Shown: positions 9,893 through 40,199 of the stretch, piece after piece
Position numbering within the stretch: the stretch's first letter is position 1
Layout of the letters: every line of letters starts with the position of its first letter
From: Trichoplax adhaerens
Lineage: Eukaryota > Animalia > Placozoa
Length of the DNA: 64,000 bases
Assembly: GCF_000150275.1 (NCBI RefSeq)
Contig: NW_002060946.1
Span: 5,928,597-5,992,596 of the forward strand
Direction of reading: 5' to 3'
Program-made: the position numbers and the translations under genes
Notes under the pieces: generated by a model
Told to the model about the DNA's origin: nothing
Database searches by the model: none
Seen by the model: only the letters and a program-made list of their open reading frames with translations

Positions 9893-12800
9893 TTAGCAAT
9901 CTTCGTAATGTCTAATCCTGCTTATAGTGACTTTCTGTATTTACACAGAAATGAGCAATGAATATTGCAATATTATTTCTACCTAAAATAATTTCTAAGA
10001 TTATAATTTTAAATATCCTGCGTATCATTTTAGCTAACCTTTGATCTATCAGAGAAACTATCAGTTGACATCGCATTTGGTAAAATAATTTGGCTTCCAG
10101 CTGTAATAGAAATTAATTTCGAGATTCAAGTATTTGCTTAAGAAATATAGTAATAGTTAAAATATTTTTAGTGGAAAAGCTTTCATTATAACAGAAATAG
10201 ATTTAATAATCAACTCCACAATTGAATTGGTTACTCAATATCTACAATAATTATAATCACACTGTTATTGCGATATCATTAAATGATAAGTTTCCACCTA
10301 CAAAAGTACAGAATTTGAATATAAGTCAGCTTCAGATTTAAATTACTCAAGGTATAGTATTAACAGCTTGAACTGTTATAATGTAATTAGAGTGAGGCAT
10401 ATTTTACGGAAAAATAATAAACTTAAGGATTTATTCTAACAGTTTCCAATCTTTACTACATCATTAGCAGATCTTATTCTATTTAACTTACAGGTACTAT
10501 GTCTAGATCGGGAGAATAGTGACATATGCAAGCTTGTCGATTTGTTCGATTTGCCACTCTGCAGAAATAAAAGTGGTAGCAAAAATTAGTTATTGGTCTG
10601 TACAATTCTTTAATCTATTAGCTCCTAAATTATCAAATATTAAATATTCCGCTATACTTACTCGAGTACTGGATCGGCTGGCACTGCGCTTGTAATATGT
10701 TGCAATAACCTAAAACGAAAAATGTTGCTTGACATTAATCGCAGTTAACATAGTAAGACTCTACAGATAGAAATTGGATAGATGGGGTGACAAATTCTTA
10801 ATATATATTCTGACATTTGTAATAATATCATAATCGACTAACTTGTCTATCCAACAGACAGTGAAATACAAAGAAAAAGAAGCCTTGAAGCCCAATTAAG
10901 GCGGTGAAGATATAGTCAATAGCAGCCACGTTAACAAATCGGACAAAGATCAAAACCCAAGTTAAGCCAAGTAAAGGCATCAATGACATAGCACGCCATA
11001 AATCTTGTCTATTTAGTAATCGGCGATGATGGATTAGTAAAGGCTTACTTTTAAATAATTTTTTGCATGTCTTGGAATATATAACTATTATATAGGTACG
11101 GATACCAATCTTATTTCATGTTTTAGTAAATGATCTCTAAATTGGAAGGCTTTAACCTTAGCATGTACAGTAGACCACAAGCCTATAACTTCGCTGCCAT
11201 AAACTCTCTATTCAGCAAGCAAATAATTCAGAATTACCTAAGCGTCTTGGTCTTATCCATAATTTCACTTTCACCTTTCTTAGCATAAGTCATTCGAGTC
11301 GATAATCGCTTATGGATAGCATGAAGAACAACCGCCAATATAAAGATATTGACCTATGAAAAATCATTAAAAGTTTCAACAATTGATGGAGTATCAGTGT
11401 GACAAAATCTAATTGCAAACAAAGTAATATGCTTAAGCTTTAGCAGGTAAATTTGTTATTATTTTAGGAAACTTACTCCAACAACTCCGGCAGCAGGACC
11501 AAGGAAATACCAAATATGATCAGATCTTAACCAACAACTGTTAATAATATGATAAAATTAATTGATGATTCTGTCAGTTAAATTATAGTTATAGTTATAT
11601 GTATCAATTTTTAGGTAAATAATAATCTCATTAACTTACAATCCGGATCCGATTGCTATATCGGAATTGTTATAAGCATGTGGGCTAATGATTGGAGTTA
11701 AAGCAACGGGAACAGCTGGCAGCACTATCATAACGAATTATGAAATAATTAATACCACATACTACATGAAATAGCGCCAGAATAATATTTCTTCCGAATA
11801 TTTAATAGGAAATGGAAATAACGATTCGGAAGCAATGGCATAGATGATAGATAACGTAGATCATAGCTTAGTTAAAATAATCATTAATCCAAAGTATTAA
11901 GAAATAAGATTTATGACATACACCATCCTAGACCAAAGTAGAATAGGGTCCAAAGACGACTATCTTGAGTGAAAACAGTAATTAGTAGACGATACATATG
12001 GATCCCTTCTACTAACATCCAAGTAAAGCAAGCAGTGGCTACATATTGTAACATAATTGCTTTTGCGATACATAGCGGCTATAATAAGATAAAGCAGAAT
12101 ATACAATTTAATGACAATCAGCTCGTTCAATATTTAGGTACAAATGACATCAGTGTGTTCATTGCAATGGCAAAAGAAAGTTCAAATTAAGTCTTTCAAA
12201 AATTTTGAAATATTTGATCCAAAAGTAGTATAAATTATATATAGCTACATGTATCTATTTTTAATCGTTACTATCAAAATTAATTCCATCTAGGTATAGC
12301 ATTAATTGCTCCTATCCATATCTATCTATTTGCAACCTTTACCATTAAAATTAAATTCACCCCACTGTCGTACAAATTACACCAATTTACGTATATCTAT
12401 CTATTTTCTCCGCTGACGCATTCTGCGATCGATATATTATCCAATACTGCTACCGGATCTCAATCAGGTGCAATGATTAAAAGTTATCAACTTATTTACT
12501 TCTAAACTTTTTCTAACTTCATCTCAAATCTAATAAGTATAAAGTTTCAAATACAGTATCTACCGTACATACGTATATATTAATATACCACAATTATGAG
12601 CTTCTACAGACATATTTCCTCCTTGATTCACTTATTCGTAAATTGAAGTATATTTCTTAGACTGTACCTGGTTCTTCCTTCATAAATAAACCTATGATCT
12701 AAATCCTCACCGAATCTGACTCTGCTGGAACGTAAGGCATAATAAAGACCACCATGATGTTAGTTAGAGCAATTGCAATGACAAGGTTAGTGTGAATCAT

Positions 12801-15800
12801 CCATTTCTTGGAGGGTGGTAGGCTGCAAAGGGCATTGATAGCATTAAAAAGTTGCTAGTAACTTATTTATTACAGTTGATTAAGCTTATATCAATCAGTA
12901 GCTCATTGATGAGCTTCTGCAGTGATTAATTTGTTCGATATTGGCTGTACTTATTTTTCTCATTTTATGAATTAAAATCACTAACATACAAGTCTCTAAT
13001 CATATTCTCAGTGGAACATATTTATAATTCATATAAATAATTTACAAACTTTATATAACTAACAGATAACAGATAGATTTACTCACTGCAAAACTGCATA
13101 AGCCACTAATGTTAATGCTATACAAAGTAAAGAGACACAGCTTGTAATAAGCCCAAGGAGGCGCAAAGCTTCTCGATCAGCACCAGATCCAGTTAGGGTA
13201 TTATTACTTCCATTTTGCTCCTGTAATGATAATAGTTGAAAAAAATAACATAAGAATCTCATCTAACTTGCATTTCAGCTTTTCTTCTCAACTTTGCAAC
13301 AATTCATGTTACTGTACGTTAACAAAATAGCTGCCCTCTAATTGCGTTCAAGTTATACCTCACCTGATAACCAGCACCTCCTAAATCACTGAAAGTAAAG
13401 GGAATTGGATTATTAAATATAAGGATACTTGTTCGATTAGCTGGTGGAACAGTCGAGCCAATAAGTGGACAAGGCTCTTTCTGACCCGTTAAAGCAATAG
13501 TAATACCATGGATAATATCCTCGATATGAAGATTATTTTCATCAATCTTGTAATTTGGATCTTGAGAAATCTCAGTATGTGCTTTGCCTACTAGAGCAGC
13601 TAATAAGGTATGAACCGTATTCTTAAGCCGATCCATTGACGTCTCCTATCGAAAAGAAATTTAAAGTAAAATTTATAGCATGATTTATTAAGAAGAAATA
13701 ACTACATTAAACAGGAATATTGGAAATAATTATTTTCTAGTAGAGAGTTATTATAATAGTATTAGCTATACAATTACCGGCACCGGACAGTGTTTATTAG
13801 CAACCATGTGCCTGACCATTTTGATACCACCGTAAGCTAGGCACTAATAATTAATTTATAAATTAAGCAAAATATTATCGATAACTGTGGTTAATTTCTT
13901 TTTGATTCTACCTTAAACATGACAGTAATAATTAATTTATAGATTAAGCAAAATATTATCATATATACAGTGAACAAGAAATAGATTGATCCTTAAATAT
14001 TGAATTAGCTTTTGATTTGGGAATCATGTAACTATTAGCTATATTATAGTCAGTCTGACTAGATAAATAATGCTATATTGCTTACATGCAAACGAAACTT
14101 TTAAATTTCATGATAATTATTGACTTAGGTCAAGTTTTAAAATTGAGCATTTCAATTTGAAGAATGCTAATTAATATATAGCAAACTTCATACAGCATAA
14201 CTACATCATAAATTAAAATTTATCATTAATATTTCTTAAAGACCTAATCCATACTTACACAACTAAATATCGTGAAATTCTTATTACTGGTTTCAGTTTG
14301 ATTAAGCCTGGATTGATATAATAGCTCAAATCCTTTAATAGGTATATTAAAATCAGCAACATCATTAAAATGATGGCGGATAAAACTCGATAGCACACCC
14401 AGATAGTACAGCGTGTAGTCATACGCAAATGGTGAATCCATCTAATCATAGAAATGAAAAATATAAATCGTCAAAATGAAATAGTTTTCATATGCTCGTA
14501 TTTCATCATATGCAAAGCTTAAAGTTTACAGCATTTTTGTCCGTAACATTAAATACTATAATTCAGGATAATTAGATTAAGCGTTCCTTCACACTCTCTC
14601 TATATATACTTCTATTTAGTAAACATTCTTTTTACTAAAACATTTACGTTGGCTCAGTTTGATATTTTGTCCTCAAGACATTCTAAGAGGATGATACTAA
14701 AACACATATAAACTGAACTAAATAATAATTTAATTCCTCTCTCTCTCTTTATTTGTAAATTTAGAAAAAATATCGCCGCAGTAACAAGCAAAAGGAAAGT
14801 AATTTTATTTTTTAACCTGTAATTACCATAACTTAGACTTGTAAGTTAAAGATCGCTATTCTTACCCTACTGACAACATCGTTCAGGACTTGCGAGTGGC
14901 AATTGCATGGATCTACGGTATCCCATTTAGCCTGATCGTTTACCGGTAAGCAAGTTCTCTGCACGTAACCTAAAGATATTCCAAATTTGCCAGCATCAAT
15001 AATGAATTCATTAACCTTACACTAATAGATAAATTGAAATGATAGCGAATAATTTTATTATCCATTTACCACTAAGGTGCATTTGTAAGCCTTCTTGATT
15101 ACGACAGTCGTTTATCTTATCGCACTTGTAATAATTAATACAACTTTCTGTTCTTCGGCCAGTTATAGTTACGTTTCTGTAGGTAGGAGGCCACAATGTA
15201 CCATCAAAATATTGGGAATAGCATTTACTAGCTTGCTCTATAATTTTGCGAGTTCAATAAAAGTGTGAGAAATTCGATTTTCATCACTATAAGGTAAAAA
15301 TGACCACTGATATAAAGATAAAGAAACCTTATGCTTCTAGTTTTGCTATCAATCTTAGATTACGATTAACGCTGACACGAACATTTCAAGTCAAACAGCT
15401 GTTAAACTACAAATCAAAAAATGACTATTGATTGTAATGAGAGATAAAGAAACCTTGTACTTCTAGTTTTGCTATCGATCTGCAATTATGTAAATTAATT
15501 ATCATTTATTCTAGTATGAAAATTTTTAATAAAATAGTCATAGCTATAAACAATTCAAACTGAAATAAAAGGCACTATTAGAAAGCAATTATTGTAACTA
15601 ACCAAAATATGAGACAATTCTATAGATGACCAGTTGTTGCATATGGATTTATTACAGTAAACAAATTAACTGTAGTGTACTGCTTGGAGTCTGCTGTCAT
15701 ACTTGTTCTCTAAGGCAGTTACCTGCATTACAACTCAATAATTGCAACTGAAAATCGTCAAGGGTCCACAAAAACTTCATATCCCTCCTAAGTTATAAGC

Positions 15801-18800
15801 TAAGTTCTTTCTTAAAACTAGCTAATAAACTAGCTAACCTATAGTATCATGATGTTAATATTCATTATCGGCGCTTATATGATACTATAAATTTATGCAA
15901 TTATTTATTCAAATCTGTCTAAAAAATTAGCTAATTTATAGTATTATAATGTTAACAATCATTATCAGTGCTTATATAGCACCATAAAAGTATATAGTAC
16001 CTATTAAAATTTGTATGAAATACTAGATAATAGTATTATCAGTACAGTATATACCAAACTATCCCATCTATCGAAATAGATTTAGAATTTTTCAATGAAA
16101 AATTACTTCATGACACCAATCTAACTGCTATATTTTCTCACTTATGAAATGGAATAGATATACGATAAAGATTTAAAAAAGTAAATTACAGACGAAGAAA
16201 ACACTGTTCGATTCGATAGAATATTCTAAACAGCTCAATATTCGACTCAAATATCTGACACAGTTCTCATTCTTCCGCAGATCTATATTAAGAGCCGTTT
16301 ATTGGAAAGGCGATAGAACTAAGAGGTATTGACTTAGATTATAGCTAAGAGCACGATATTAAAGAAAAACTACCTAAACGTGGTGGACAATCGGCAACAG
16401 ACGCAGCTGGTTCAAAGTTTTGACAGCATATAACTGTGCCATTTGTATCGTTGGCCAGAGCATCTACTATTGGAGCCAATGTTTTTGGCTACAAGCAATG
16501 AAAAATTCAGCTAGTGTTAAGTTAATTGAAAACTTTAGTTTAATCGTTTCAAGAATAAAGTGTTAGGTGCCGCCAAATCTAAGGCAGATATAAAATAATC
16601 AAATTATTCAAATTATTTATACTGGGTTTGGATAACTATAAAATTTGCTACACCAATTAAATACATATAAATTTCATTAGTATTCAGGTAAAGTCGGAAG
16701 TGAGGTTTAACACATCTAAGTTCATTGTAGAATTATTCTAAGAACTAATTCAAGCAAGTTAAAATGCATCTGAAATATCTTACCGCATCTGAACAAGAAG
16801 TAAGATTCATGACTCTCAGAGCAGCTTGATATAGACACTATAAATTGACGTAGAATGAATTTTGAAATAACTTTAAACTCAATATCTATTGTCAGTAGAA
16901 TTGCTAAAATGATTCGAAGTAAATAATTCCAGAACTCATGATAGAGGAAAAGAACTTACATGAGAATTCCAATTTCGCGTTAAATCATTACTATGAGAGG
17001 GCAATGAATAGATTGAATATAAAGTTTTAATGGTAGAAACCAAATCATCCAAAAAAAAATTAGGATTGCCAAGTATTCTTCTGGGTTGACTAAAGAAATT
17101 ACTCATAAGTTCATTGTCCACATTTTTTGCATAAGTGTGTAATACTGATGCATTTGTGCTTTCGGTGGTATTCTATAAATTGTAAAAATAAAAAAAAAGG
17201 AATTTTAAATTATTCATTTCAACTTAGACAAGAACTACTCTCCAATAATTTTTCATATTGCCTATGAATACGTCATATCATATGTCATTTTATAACATAA
17301 AAGAATATATGATGTCTGTATCAGGTTAATATTAGCATATATTGTTAATACAAAATAAAATGAATTTATTTCAATGACATAGCAAATCTACTCTCTGCAT
17401 CCTTATAGCCTTGACCATTACGCCTATAGCTAACGTATAAATAATAGATAACTATTTTATTTTGAATAGATTAAATTTTTGGTTGATAGATTTCTAAATT
17501 AATTTATAACTGAAGTATAAATTATCATTTTTACTTTATTCTGAATAGGGTATATTAATATTACAAATCGATGAACTGCTCTTATGATTTCAGCTTGATT
17601 AAAATATCAACATTTTGCATTTCGGTTCGTTTCATTCAACAATACTATAATCTAAGGTACATTAAAATTTAAAAGCGACAGAAAAAGGCTGAAAGGTAAG
17701 CTGTAAAGCCAAGAATTCATAAAAAAAATCATTACAAAAGTCTTCATTAATAGTATTTAAATTAGTCCTGCATCATCTAATTAAATCAATTAAAAATCTT
17801 AATACTAGCAGCATCTATAAAAAATTGAACAATAAATAGAAAGCTGGTTACGGCTCTATAATATTCATTTCTATAATTTCTATCAGAATTTATTATTACA
17901 ATTTTATAGGAATACGTTGGAATAATTACAGATTCAAACAATAAAATGTAAATCACATGAAGCCCTTTACCTCAAGGTTGGCTTTCATATTTGCAATACT
18001 TTTTTGATTACATCGGCATATGTCAATGTCTGTTAATCCACCTAATATCCAACCTCCAGGAGCTTTCCAACAAGGTAATTTCACTTCTCCAGCTATAACT
18101 ATAACAAAATCATTAAGCTAACTATTAGTGCAAGGATAAAAATACTGGCGATATTCCGTATATAGTACTATGATATTGCTATTGATCTATGAAATAATAG
18201 AGTAAATTAATTAACGACTTTATAACATTCAGCTATTGGAGGCCTTAAAGTCGGCATACACAAAATCGTAAAGGCAGGCAATTAAATAACTCATCTGACC
18301 AAAGTTCTAGCTGTCCATCAAATACAATCAGTAGTTTCCTATATTTCTATATCAATTTTAAATACAGAAACTCCTATAGGCAGGCAAGCAATGAATTATC
18401 TATCTTACTAAGGAGGTCATTGTAGCTATTCATTCAAGATCTCCTTGGATCTCAATATTTTTCAAATCATCTTATAGCGTATTATAGACCAGATTGTTTA
18501 CTATCGTATTTCGTCACAGTTTTATACTTATACGCCAATCGCTATCCTATAATTCGTTCTTTTTAAATAAATCGAGTGCTGTATAACGTAGTTTGAATTC
18601 AAGTCATCTATTTTAAGACTACATAGTTGCATCTTCCCAAATTTTAGAAACTGCTTTATCTTGATATTTGTCTATTTTTAGTAAACTTACGATTGCATTT
18701 TTAATATTAATCAAATGAATCAAAGTTCCAGATATCAACAAATCTAGGTGATTATAATGTAAAGAAGCGTCTGCCTTGCATGAAGAGCATATTAAAGTAC

Positions 18801-19046
18801 AATCAGTACGGTAATGTCATTTATTCTTAGCCTTGGTACACTTTGAAAATAAGAGAATATTATCTACTAATGATATCAAATAGAATTATCTCTTACCTGT
18901 ATTTCCTTGAGTACCAAATAGTGAAGTAGATCTGCAACTATGAGATACATTTATTGTAGTATCGTTTGAATTCGAATCTGGCTTAAGATACCATATTGTT
19001 CCAGCTACAAAGCCGTAACAAAATGGATATGCAGTACTGGCAGTAG
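9893..19046 (-). CDS. Adhesion-class (family B2) GPCR: two HRM-like domains, reduced GAIN-like region without GPS, 7TM; 5' signal-peptide exon(s) uncertain
   Basis: 20 phase-compatible GT-AG exons: 19046-18897, 18092-17971, 17172-16960, 16837-16784, 16488-16374, 14969-14866, 14441-14259, 13843-13778, 13645-13364, 13220-13087, 12822-12711, 12078-11922, 11724-11640, 11537-11477, 11353-11238, 11008-10843, 10709-10662, 10558-10492, 10100-10039, 9934-9893. 7TM motifs: ALRLLGLITSCVSLLCIALTL, IHTNLVIAI, FTWMLVEGIHMY, GLGWLLP, CWL, FLGP, LLGLTW, LQGFFFFVFHCL. The last two exons are less certain (alternative read-through stop near 10437). Confidence 0.9.
15296..15481. repeat. Intronic direct duplication (~60-bp core, 2 copies)
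   Basis: GATAAAGAAACCTT(A/G)T(G/A)CTTCTAGTTTTGCTATC(A/G)ATCT at ~15318 and ~15443. Confidence 0.8.
15831..15990. repeat. Intronic direct duplication (~60 bp, 2 diverged copies)
   Basis: TAGCTAA..TATAGTAT.AT.ATGTTAA.A.TCATTATC.G.GCTTATAT at ~15831 and ~15928. Confidence 0.7.
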
Positions 19047-22000
19047 CTACAGAAATAAATCAATACGTTATCATATTAAGAAATACTGCATGAATACATT
19101 TATATAATATATATTTAATAACGTATACACATTTATCTACAAATGTTGAACCATTAATTAAAATATACAGGCACATGCATGCTCAACCATAGGTTGTAAA
19201 TTAGTAAATGCAATTTACTAATTATGTTTCAATTGAATATTTCATAATACAGTTGAGTATTTTGTTATAACTGACATAAAGTTGTAACTATTGTAAAGTT
19301 GTATAACAGTGAACATTGTAATCACAATTATTTGGCTAAGCATTTAACTCTCGGAATTGTTATTTAGTATTAGATACGTACTGTAATATACGAACTCATT
19401 ATATGCCATCTTAAGTAATTTCCTATGACTGGCATGAAGCCACCTCTGCACTAATTGTGTAGAATTGCGATTGTACTAATGATGTGAATTAGACTAGAAA
19501 TTTAGTAGCTACGGCAACAATTATATCATAATCATAATGGCTGATAATAGTAAGTAGCTCGCTTCCATTTTCATTGAACTTAGTCAAAATATCGATAGAT
19601 CTCGCATAGAATACCTTTCTAATAATATAATATGCAAATTTAAACTAGTGGAACATTGAGTACCTTTATCAGCTCTTTCTAAGAGAATTAATCACAGATT
19701 GACTATTTTAAAAAAATTGCTTTCATAGTATACAATAATGTATATAGCAAGGTTAAGAGAAAAATGATATTTTGAATATCTCCATACTTAAGCACATTTA
19801 TATCTCTTTATTACTTTTCAGATTCTGATGCAAAGCTGATAAATTCATAAAAACGTTCCCTAACAGTAGCATACTACTTAGTGCTACAGGTAATAAACCA
19901 GCACCAATATAATGCTATGCATAGCTCATTTAATGACCTATGGGCTCCTTCATAAACCCATAATGCAGCCAATGTTGGTTATTAAATCTTAGAAAAAACC
20001 ATACTACAAATCATTACGTACACTATAAGAGCTAGGAAGTGAAGTATTTTAGCACCATCATCGAAATAAGATAGTTTTGCAATAACTTTATGTACAATAA
20101 CATCTTATGTTTTAATTAAATAATTATAATGCTATTTCGTGCATATTATAAAATCTCAAATTTACTTCCCATTCAGTATTACATAATAGGGACGGTTAAA
20201 TTTTCTGCTAGATTTGAACTATAGATATACAGCCCTTCCTTAGCAGGATAAAATTAGTACTTCTGCAATGTATTGTACAGCGTAGAAATAAATATATGCT
20301 ACTAATTTATGGCGCAGACACAAATAAATAAACAAGAACAGCAATTAATCATCTAACTTACTAAATAATTCATTAATTATATAGGTATATGTCACAATTT
20401 CACTTCTGCGACAAGGTAACATACAGTAAAAGCCTATAAGTAGCTACTGACTTAAGCGCCCTTTTACTTAACGTTAAACACACACAGCAAAAGACTGTAA
20501 AGATGAAGCTTTTATTAGCAAAGATACATCTACAACTTTTTACCACCCTCTCAACTCAAATGTTCCCGTTTATATAGGAACCGTCTAATTTGTAAATAAC
20601 AACAGTATTATTATTATACCCTACTAGGAGAATCATCTCGAACTAAGATGCTCCTTACATAGCTTTTCTATCAGTAAATATTTTGAATCTCTTACGCATA
20701 CTTAATCTTAATCTAAGCTCGTAGGTTGTCTAATTTAACTATCATCAACTAGAACTTGAATCATCCTACTGCTATCTATCACACAATAACAATCAATATC
20801 AAATATGTAATGAACTATTACAAACAATATCTACGTTAAGGCATTACTTATCTTACCTAGCACTACAAATATGGATATTCTCCATACTAGCTACTACTGT
20901 ACTTATTAAACTATCCTAATGACAAGGCAACACCGTAACAGTATACTACCTATATTACAAATATAAATTAGTTCTAAACAATTTTATGATACTGTAATAC
21001 TAGACTACATTAAGAAGCTATGATCAAACTTGCAATAAATGCAATGAATGATTACGTACATCGTAGAAATGTTGCAATTTTTGTTATTCATTATATTGCC
21101 TGAGGCAACACTTTAAGCTATTGTCTCAATAAATAAGACTAAAATTAAATGACTTGAATGGATGATAGCAGTTATATAGTAGTAAAGTTAAAATGTAGCG
21201 AAATTTTTTTGATAAAACTATTTCTTATAACTTCACAGGAATAAATACTAATAAACGTAATTATTTTAATAGTAGAAGCTCTCTATTCGCACACTTTGAC
21301 TTATGAGCCTATCTGCAATAATCTACAGTATTCTATCGACTGCTGAAGTTGTAGTATTATAGTAAAGCTACACATTAGATGCGAATTCATTATATAATTA
21401 TCAATCCAGACTACGATCCTGGCTCACTTACGTTGCTAAACAAAATGTTGTTTGCTACTATAATTTGATTAGAAATTTTATATCTTTAGTGTTCTTGTTA
21501 GCTAGTCTACGTTGTTTTTATTCTTCCTCTCGCTAAAGTAGTTAATCTAGGAATTGGAGCGATGAAATTAGAGTAGCCGTTTAGCAATTGCAATCAATTT
21601 GACAATATTACTACTTATAGTAAGTTAGGATTATTTAACATTATCCTGTTTACTTAATTATTCGGGCAGAAAACTTGGAGATAACAATTAATGAATCAAA
21701 AATAACAATCCTATGTATGATTACTCATCATAATCTCGTCTCTGTGGTTTTATATTAGTTTTGACGAATTTTTTTTCTTTCGATGCCGCAAGGTATAAAA
21801 TTTTATTCTACGAACACATTCATAGTCTATGGATACATATTTATTAACAATGCTCAAATGGTTGTCAATATCTATTCTTACTGACCAACATAGACTAATC
21901 TATTAAAATTATAATATATAATGATCAAAGAGATTCTATTTTGTAACCCAATGATGTTATCTAGTTACGATCTATTGAATAAGAAAACTTGCACCTAAAG

Positions 22001-31457: not shown

Positions 31458-40199
<8,742 letters not shown>

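Follow-up and report, generated by a model that had tools for sequence, protein, structure and literature searches.

The genome of the placozoan Trichoplax adhaerens (105.6 Mb in 1414 contigs) carries on contig NW_002060946.1 a gene for a class-B G protein-coupled receptor (GPCR), which we analysed within a stretch of 64,000 nt (positions 5,928,597 to 5,992,596 of the contig, hereafter the window) that has about 30% G+C and contains spliced genes. Adhesion GPCRs (class B2) are defined by a GAIN/GPS module and a tethered agonist, or Stachel. We consider it likely that the window gene encodes a functional class-B receptor in which an adhesion-type seven-transmembrane (7TM) core is combined with an HRM-like ectodomain, with no GPS, no Stachel and no detectable GAIN domain, that this state is common to a whole clade of related genes, and that the GPS part was lost once. 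The gene lies on the minus strand, as do all of its features given below in window coordinates, from approximately 19.1 to 10.4 kb. Its exons were read from the sequence, each junction was checked by script for frame, splice sites and hydropathy, and Pfam and structure searches on the gene were run exon by exon. All introns between the HRM-like exon and the stop codon (13/13) presented AG/GT boundaries, and the predicted spliced frame was open across 600 aa and contained seven hydrophobic segments.

The region where a GPS would be expected consists of two exons and a short intron. The exon before the first transmembrane segment (pre-TM1 exon, 13364..13645) encodes 94 aa of ectodomain, is bounded by an AG acceptor and a GTGAGG donor and is in phase 0 at both ends. 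After a helical N-terminal part comes a conserved C..IG..VPP...N core, and the C-terminal end of the exon reads ...NNPIPFTFSDLGGAGYQ (also given as ...PIPFTFSDLGGAGYQ); it holds no GPS and no Trp, the last 45 residues included. Across an intron of 143 nt (13221..13363, GTGAGG...ACAG boundaries) it is joined in phase 0 to the TM1 exon (13087..13220), which begins EQNGSNNTL..., continues with a hydrophilic linker rich in N-glycosylation sites (EQNGSNNTLTGSGADRE) and then TM1, and ends in phase 2. The position of this intron is the site occupied by the GPS exons in GPS-bearing paralogs of the same genome. The original prediction had proposed both the phase 0 junction and an intron devoid of any Cys/Trp-rich exon. 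The former is confirmed here by the sequence, the script check and an orthologous contig (see below), and the latter by the finding that the intron has no open frame holding Cys or Trp and no match to GPS hidden Markov models (HMM).

The absence of the GPS was examined with two profiles. With Pfam GPS (PF01825), a six-frame scan of the complete genome (E<=10) yielded 64 matches. None of them fell within the window, within 54 kb upstream, in the three tandem paralogs described below, or on contigs C1403 and C1392, which carry further members of the family. A local HMM was built from 31 GPS exons of the same genome, W..GC...C.C.HLT.FA being kept in 31/31 GPS exons of the neighbouring paralogs, and it was searched with filters off on all open stretches of at least 10 aa in 118.6 kb around the gene plus three related loci; the best match had E=2. 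Pfam returned no match of any kind for the pre-TM1 exon. In addition, six family members were scanned for motifs, and neither HL[TS].F[AG] nor, in the membrane-proximal region ahead of TM1, any looser Stachel-like motif was disclosed; in the family as a whole, Trp was likewise missing from the last 45 aa of the pre-TM1 exon. Hence, of the features that characterize class B2, a GPS immediately before TM1 is missing from the window gene, and the tethered agonist (T.F[AG].LM) before TM1 is missing from all six members scanned. The predicted lack of GPS and Stachel was in this way upheld by Pfam, by the local HMM and by the motif scan, and the significant GPS match that had been named as the contrary outcome appeared in neither profile search.

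Similarity searches provided an ortholog. When the 94-aa exon was compared by HMMER with 1.84 billion representative proteins, only one true relative was found, the fragment P0001 (72-74% identity), whose source is a 666-nt contig (L017) from an independent ENA assembly of a related organism. This contig displays the same exon end (...GGAGFQ, then GT), an intron of 138 nt and, in the same phase, a TM1 exon that starts EQNETNS... and is 82% identical to that of the window; the two introns, with 47% identity, are unalignable. Over the two exons, the proportions of nonsynonymous (pN) and synonymous (pS) differences were 0.14 and 0.72, the latter saturated, with an omega of about 0.07. The low pN with respect to pS and the conserved junction show that the junction is real and that the exons are under purifying selection, and the fact that L017 has the same exon-intron-exon arrangement excludes an assembly deletion, a check that had been called for, as well as a chance open frame. 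It is thus very improbable that a GPS exon is present and was missed because of a deletion, a gap or an alternative exon: there is a run of 324 N, perhaps an assembly gap, at G000:C1411:5916938-5917261 (L015), in the ectodomain region of one tandem paralog (A), but the window holds no N, the independent assembly and four paralogs present the same architecture, and the two GPS profiles were negative in six frames. We also give very little credence to a decaying pseudogene from which the GPS exon was deleted. One family copy, on contig C1392, does look degenerate, with a broken TM3 motif and a very long branch, but in the window gene the spliced frame is open and the splice sites are canonical, the class-B motifs (the TM3 Cys, CW in extracellular loop 2 (ECL2), PLLG..W and QG) are kept and, instead of being relaxed, omega is about 0.07 in the comparison with the ortholog, in which synonymous sites are saturated. 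With the 600-aa open frame, this value agrees with the earlier view that the splice phases are compatible and that a functional receptor unable to cleave itself is probable. Among the candidates rejected in these searches, P0002 (a repeat protein of 412 aa, composed of units of about 60 aa, ...INIEDLLHGVSVATSPFP...) matched the exon weakly (E=8e-4) and only via the short word IEDIIHG, and was judged spurious; the best ESM Atlas score for the pre-TM1 exon (0.79, to epimerases) was at chance level.

The window gene is not alone in this state. Its contig carries, further upstream, three tandem class-B genes (A, B and C, loci L011-L016) at approximately 5.882, 5.897 and 5.911 Mb, and a further family gene was found on C1403 at 1.674 Mb. 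Alignments showed that the ectodomain is common to these five genes exon by exon, in the order CC..C exon, HRM-like domain (which may be split), helix-like exon, CLL mini-exon, pre-TM1 exon, glycosylation-rich linker and TM1. The pre-TM1 exon is homologous in the four paralogs, with an invariant C..(I/V)G..VPP...N core, and a two-residue insertion after TM3 is also common to the GPS-less family. Since the architecture is shared exon by exon, the GPS-less state predates the duplications and has been maintained by purifying selection, and the identity of 45-52% among the paralogs in the TM exons indicates that it is old. A sixth copy was observed on the minus strand of C1392 (L049, G000:C1392:347001-357000). 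The start of its TM3 (PLCIAKG...) is the one most similar to that of the window gene, but the W and EG motifs of this TM3 have been substituted, and a charged run comes after them; neither HRM nor pre-TM1 exons were visible in this locus, and the copy is probably decaying.

We performed a maximum-likelihood analysis of 31 class-B genes with the TM2, TM3 and TM6-7 exons (128 columns, unrooted). The six GPS-less genes were placed on one side of a single branch (ultrafast bootstrap 78, SH-aLRT 99), and when the presence of the GPS was mapped on the tree one change of state was sufficient. These results show that the GPS-less state is a property of a clade, made up of at least five intact genes and one decaying copy, and not an event in a single gene. 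The original prediction had spoken of a loss of the GPS and the tethered agonist: the absence of both stands, while the loss itself is deduced by parsimony and concerns the clade rather than one gene. A literature search found no paper describing this placozoan family.

The TM3 and TM6-7 exons of the window gene matched Pfam 7tm_2 (PF00002) with E=1.2e-11 and E=7.2e-6, respectively, and the solved structures closest to them were those of ADGRD1, ADGRL3 and ADGRG6. Against the PDB sequences, the TM3 exon alone had ADGRD1 as its best match (2.3e-8), and the TM6-7 exon alone matched ADGRD1 and ADGRL3 at about 1e-6 and the secretin-class receptor CRF1R at 3e-3. With family profiles the difference was larger: that of TM6-7 scored 2.6e-14 with ADGRL3 and 3.5e-7 with CRF1R, the best of the secretin class, and that of TM3 scored 4e-12 with ADGRD1 and 3.3e-6 with VIPR1. 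Because secretin-class (B1) receptors are 6-7 orders of magnitude worse than B2 receptors, we classify the 7TM core, by sequence similarity, as adhesion-type and not B1, in agreement with the original prediction, which the Pfam and PDB scores support on this point.

Upstream of the helix-like exon, the ectodomain contains a membrane-proximal domain that we read as a divergent HRM. Its first half (15070..15237, C....LWPPT......C) has an insert of about 20 aa with two extra Cys, and its second half (14866..14969, G.V.R.C...W....C.C), with AG/GT boundaries, aligns with the paralogs. In the C1403 paralog the corresponding domain lies in a single exon, which matched positions 4-64 of the 66 in the Pfam HRM profile (PF02793) with E=1.2e-5; its score of 26.1 bits is 0.1 below the curated cut-off of 26.2. 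The exons of the window gene fit the Cys/Trp pattern of this paralog despite the insert. The HRM domains put forward earlier thus have support at the level of the family, just under the cut-off, but not as a Pfam call on the split exons of the window gene. A second HRM-like module appears to lie further upstream, and the distance from the last HRM Cys to TM1 is 205 aa. The single HRM directly before TM1 and the B1-type 7TM that are proper to the secretin class are, accordingly, not those of this gene.

What occupies the space between HRM and TM1 was investigated by several methods. A GAIN domain is made up of 6 helices and a 13-strand sandwich. It measures about 320 aa (PMC3321182), and in canonical HRM-GAIN-7TM modules there are 280-330 aa from HRM to TM1 (PMC12716839). 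In the window gene the helix-like exon occupies the position of GAIN subdomain A, and this exon and the 205-aa spacing are compatible with a truncated GAIN, without demonstrating one. In GPS-bearing paralogs, a strand motif (I/L)NS.I(I/L)S...P(F/V).(F/Y)TL.H is on the exon before the small GPS exon, the TM1 exon being the next. The original prediction had identified the end of the pre-TM1 exon (...PIPFTFSDL) with this strand preceding the GPS, a proposal that found no support: when an HMM of the pre-GPS strand exon, built from nine GPS-bearing paralogs, was searched against the region, exon 13645-13364 was not among the matches, and its PFTF motif is not common to other family members. The same segment (...PFTFSDLG...) might alternatively represent the C.C.HL/T.FA.L strands themselves, kept as the degenerate end of an uncleavable GAIN and possibly acting as a tethered agonist that is not released. 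In favour of this, F-T-F-S-D-L has a spacing that can be overlaid on C-x-C-x-H-L, or on T-x-F-A-x-L, where +3 is aromatic and +6 is Leu. The segment has hardly changed in the ortholog, and the stretch of about 29 aa that separates it from TM1 is comparable to the one found after the real Stachel sequences of the paralogs. However, the segment received no score from Pfam GPS or from the local GPS HMM, the motif is missing at the aligned position in the other four family members, and the stretch that follows is Gly-rich and hydrophilic. AlphaFold2 run on the pre-TM1 exon alone (alignment of 5 sequences) yielded helices at residues 2-19, 23-27 and 41-53 and left residues 55-94 unstructured, with a pLDDT (predicted local distance difference test) below 50 in this segment; the mean pLDDT of 55.6 was too poor for a fold search. 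We thus hold this explanation to be quite unlikely.

We believe instead that the ancestor of the clade would have been an HRM-GAIN-GPS-7TM receptor and that the GPS-bearing part of its GAIN domain would have been lost in one event. Provided that the family is real, a loss seems to us quite likely, on the basis of parsimony and the literature. A single loss is inferred because the HRM-GAIN-GPS-7TM module is ancestral in holozoan adhesion GPCRs, and it is favoured because in this genome a GPS is encoded by about 50 of the approximately 62 class-B genes and because the clade shares both TM3-exon boundaries with 25 GPS-bearing paralogs, the upstream one being absent from a nearly intronless gene (L001) that served as the local HRM-GAIN-GPS-7TM reference. 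This gene (G000:C1378:239868-243002) presents HRM, GAIN (E=3.9e-15), GPS (E=5.8e-15) and 7tm_2, and is the most canonical latrophilin-like module of the genome.

Several results weigh against this reconstruction. A family HMM of the pre-TM1 exon, run on all frames of 35 GPS-bearing loci, gave nothing below E=2.8. Profiles of the pre-TM1 exon (A1) and of the helical exon (A2) yielded only chance matches among PDB sequences (E>=0.5), and hhalign of both with the GAIN-GPS open reading frame of L001 gave probabilities of 0.1% or less. Pfam GAIN, searched in six frames over the genome, had no match in the window. A GAIN remnant was, as far as sequence and profile comparisons can tell, not demonstrated by any search. 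Likewise, Pfam HRM did not match the split exons of the window gene, either in the exon search or in the six-frame genome scan. Finally, in the tree, which has no root and is short (128 columns), the clade is not demonstrably nested inside the GPS-bearing genes, so that the term loss rests on parsimony and literature. The lack of any GAIN trace in the exons of the family would also be expected if the clade had never had GAIN/GPS and represented a class-B lineage in which an HRM ectodomain was joined to the 7TM without GAIN, and midpoint rooting, which puts the six genes as sister to the sampled GPS-bearing genes and not among them, points in the same direction. Such an origin is unlikely, in our opinion, in view of the GPS found in most class-B genes of this genome, of the TM3-exon boundaries mentioned above, and of the 205-aa stretch, whose helical exons are at the position of GAIN subdomain A.

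The reading of a single loss has consequences for the mechanism. Without a GPS the receptor could not self-cleave, and without a hydrophobic Stachel the canonical tethered-agonist route would be closed. Activation would then probably take place through a ligand engaging the HRM-bearing ectodomain, the 7TM pocket, or both, as in secretin-class receptors. The class-B pocket residues and the constrained, Cys-rich HRM ectodomain suggest, by analogy, activation of the clade by an external ligand. The more specific proposal that the clade gave up GAIN/GPS activation and that its members are now receptors for soluble ligands through the HRM ectodomain, perhaps for secreted peptides, is speculative and we regard it as doubtful.

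The comparison with known systems illustrates these points. As in adhesion GPCRs such as ADGRL3 and ADGRD1, which are the best matches of the 7tm_2 core, a long Cys-rich ectodomain with an HRM-like domain precedes the 7TM, and the window gene belongs to a large placozoan expansion of adhesion-type genes. Unlike them, it has no GPS, Stachel or detectable GAIN, and about 205 aa, not 280-330, separate HRM and TM1. With the GPS-bearing paralogs of the genome (L002-L010, L023-L047) the clade shares the TM3-exon boundaries, with 40-52% identity in that exon, and an HRM upstream in many of them (Pfam places the HRM match a few kb upstream of the GPS); in contrast, all of these paralogs have W..GC...C.C.HLT.FA.L on a small exon of its own, placed after the ectodomain and before the TM1 exon, and the GPS-less clade does not. 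The secretin-class receptors (B1: CRF1R, VIPR1, GCGR), with an HRM-type ectodomain, no GAIN/GPS and no tethered agonist, resemble the window gene, with its HRM-like ectodomain, no GPS, no detectable GAIN and no Stachel, but differ in their 7TM, to which that of the window gene is the more distant match, in having HRM next to TM1, and in that the window gene apparently carries two HRM-like modules. Adhesion-type 7TM domains without GPS are known elsewhere. In humans, ADGRA1 (GPR123), which has almost no ectodomain, is not known to carry the GPS module. In the sponge Amphimedon, 12 of 40 adhesion GPCRs were reported to lack the GPS (PMC4302439); their N-termini are short, and incomplete gene models were suspected by the authors themselves. 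The placozoan clade differs from both in its long HRM-bearing ectodomain, conserved in the paralogs and in the ortholog and verified at the genome level. It is an uncommon variant within a known receptor class, and it extends the known exceptions without being a new system or principle.

A whole conserved clade without GPS or Stachel in an early-branching animal needs another mode of activation, and represents a natural system for studying the activation of a B2-type helix bundle in the absence of a Stachel, as well as a set of candidate receptors for placozoan peptide signals. It has been proposed, according to the accounts given in PMC4302439 and PMC12716839 of the work of Nordstrom (2009), that secretin receptors arose from adhesion GPCRs by loss of GAIN. 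If the soluble-ligand proposal were true, the clade would be an independent, living replay of that adhesion-to-secretin transition, and its members would be candidate receptors for placozoan secretory peptides.

Class-B genes without a GPS match were also observed outside this clade. On C1409, an intronless frame of 768 aa with a complete 7tm_2 (G000:C1409:4548190-4548939, E=1.2e-22) and an adjoining 7tm_2 gene (G000:C1409:4552688-4553176) had no GPS match, and constitute another GPS-less class-B lineage of the genome. On the plus strand of C1398 (L050, G000:C1398:429001-437000), exons for leucine-rich repeats, Ig-like domains, HRM (30.1 bits) and 7tm_2 follow a layout similar to that of ADGRA (GPR124/125), with no Pfam GPS nearby.

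The remaining exons of the window gene complete the model. Directly upstream of the pre-TM1 exon there is a mini-exon of 22 aa (13778..13843, CLAYGG...HCPVP), with two Cys, phase 0 at both ends and AG/GT boundaries, which was absent from the exon list of the original prediction and is added here; homologous mini-exons (CLL...C.I.V) are present in paralogs B and C and in the C1403 gene, and none was seen in paralog A. Between it and the HRM-like domain, the helix-like exon of 61 aa (14259..14441, AG/GT boundaries) shows the sequence pattern of amphipathic helices and, aligned with the four paralogs, has invariant Y9, Y13, L14, S19 and F20; Pfam and PDB searches gave no match for it. The distal ectodomain exons span 16348..19059, with approximate open-frame limits. 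They include the CC..C exon (16488-16348), an open frame that aligns with the paralogs, a helical exon (17172-16939, approximate limits), and the first HRM-like pair, in two open frames of likewise approximate limits (19059-18889 and 18117-17956).

On the other side of TM1, the TM2 exon (12711..12822, AG/GT boundaries) has homologs in the paralogs, and the TM3 exon (11922..12078) starts at the conserved Cys and ends in GLGW. The exons for TM4 (11724-11640), for ECL2 (containing CW) together with the beginning of TM5 (11537-11477), and for TM5 and intracellular loop 3 (11353-11238) are open frames with AG/GT junctions. The TM6-TM7 exon (10843..11008) carries PLLGLTW ... LQGFFFF ... CLLDRQ, and two exons encode the C-terminal tail, one at 10709-10662 and a tentative last one that starts at 10558 and runs to the stop codon (10438-10436). 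Upstream of the receptor, at about 31500-33900 of the window, the minus strand contains exons of a gene for the largest subunit of RNA polymerase.

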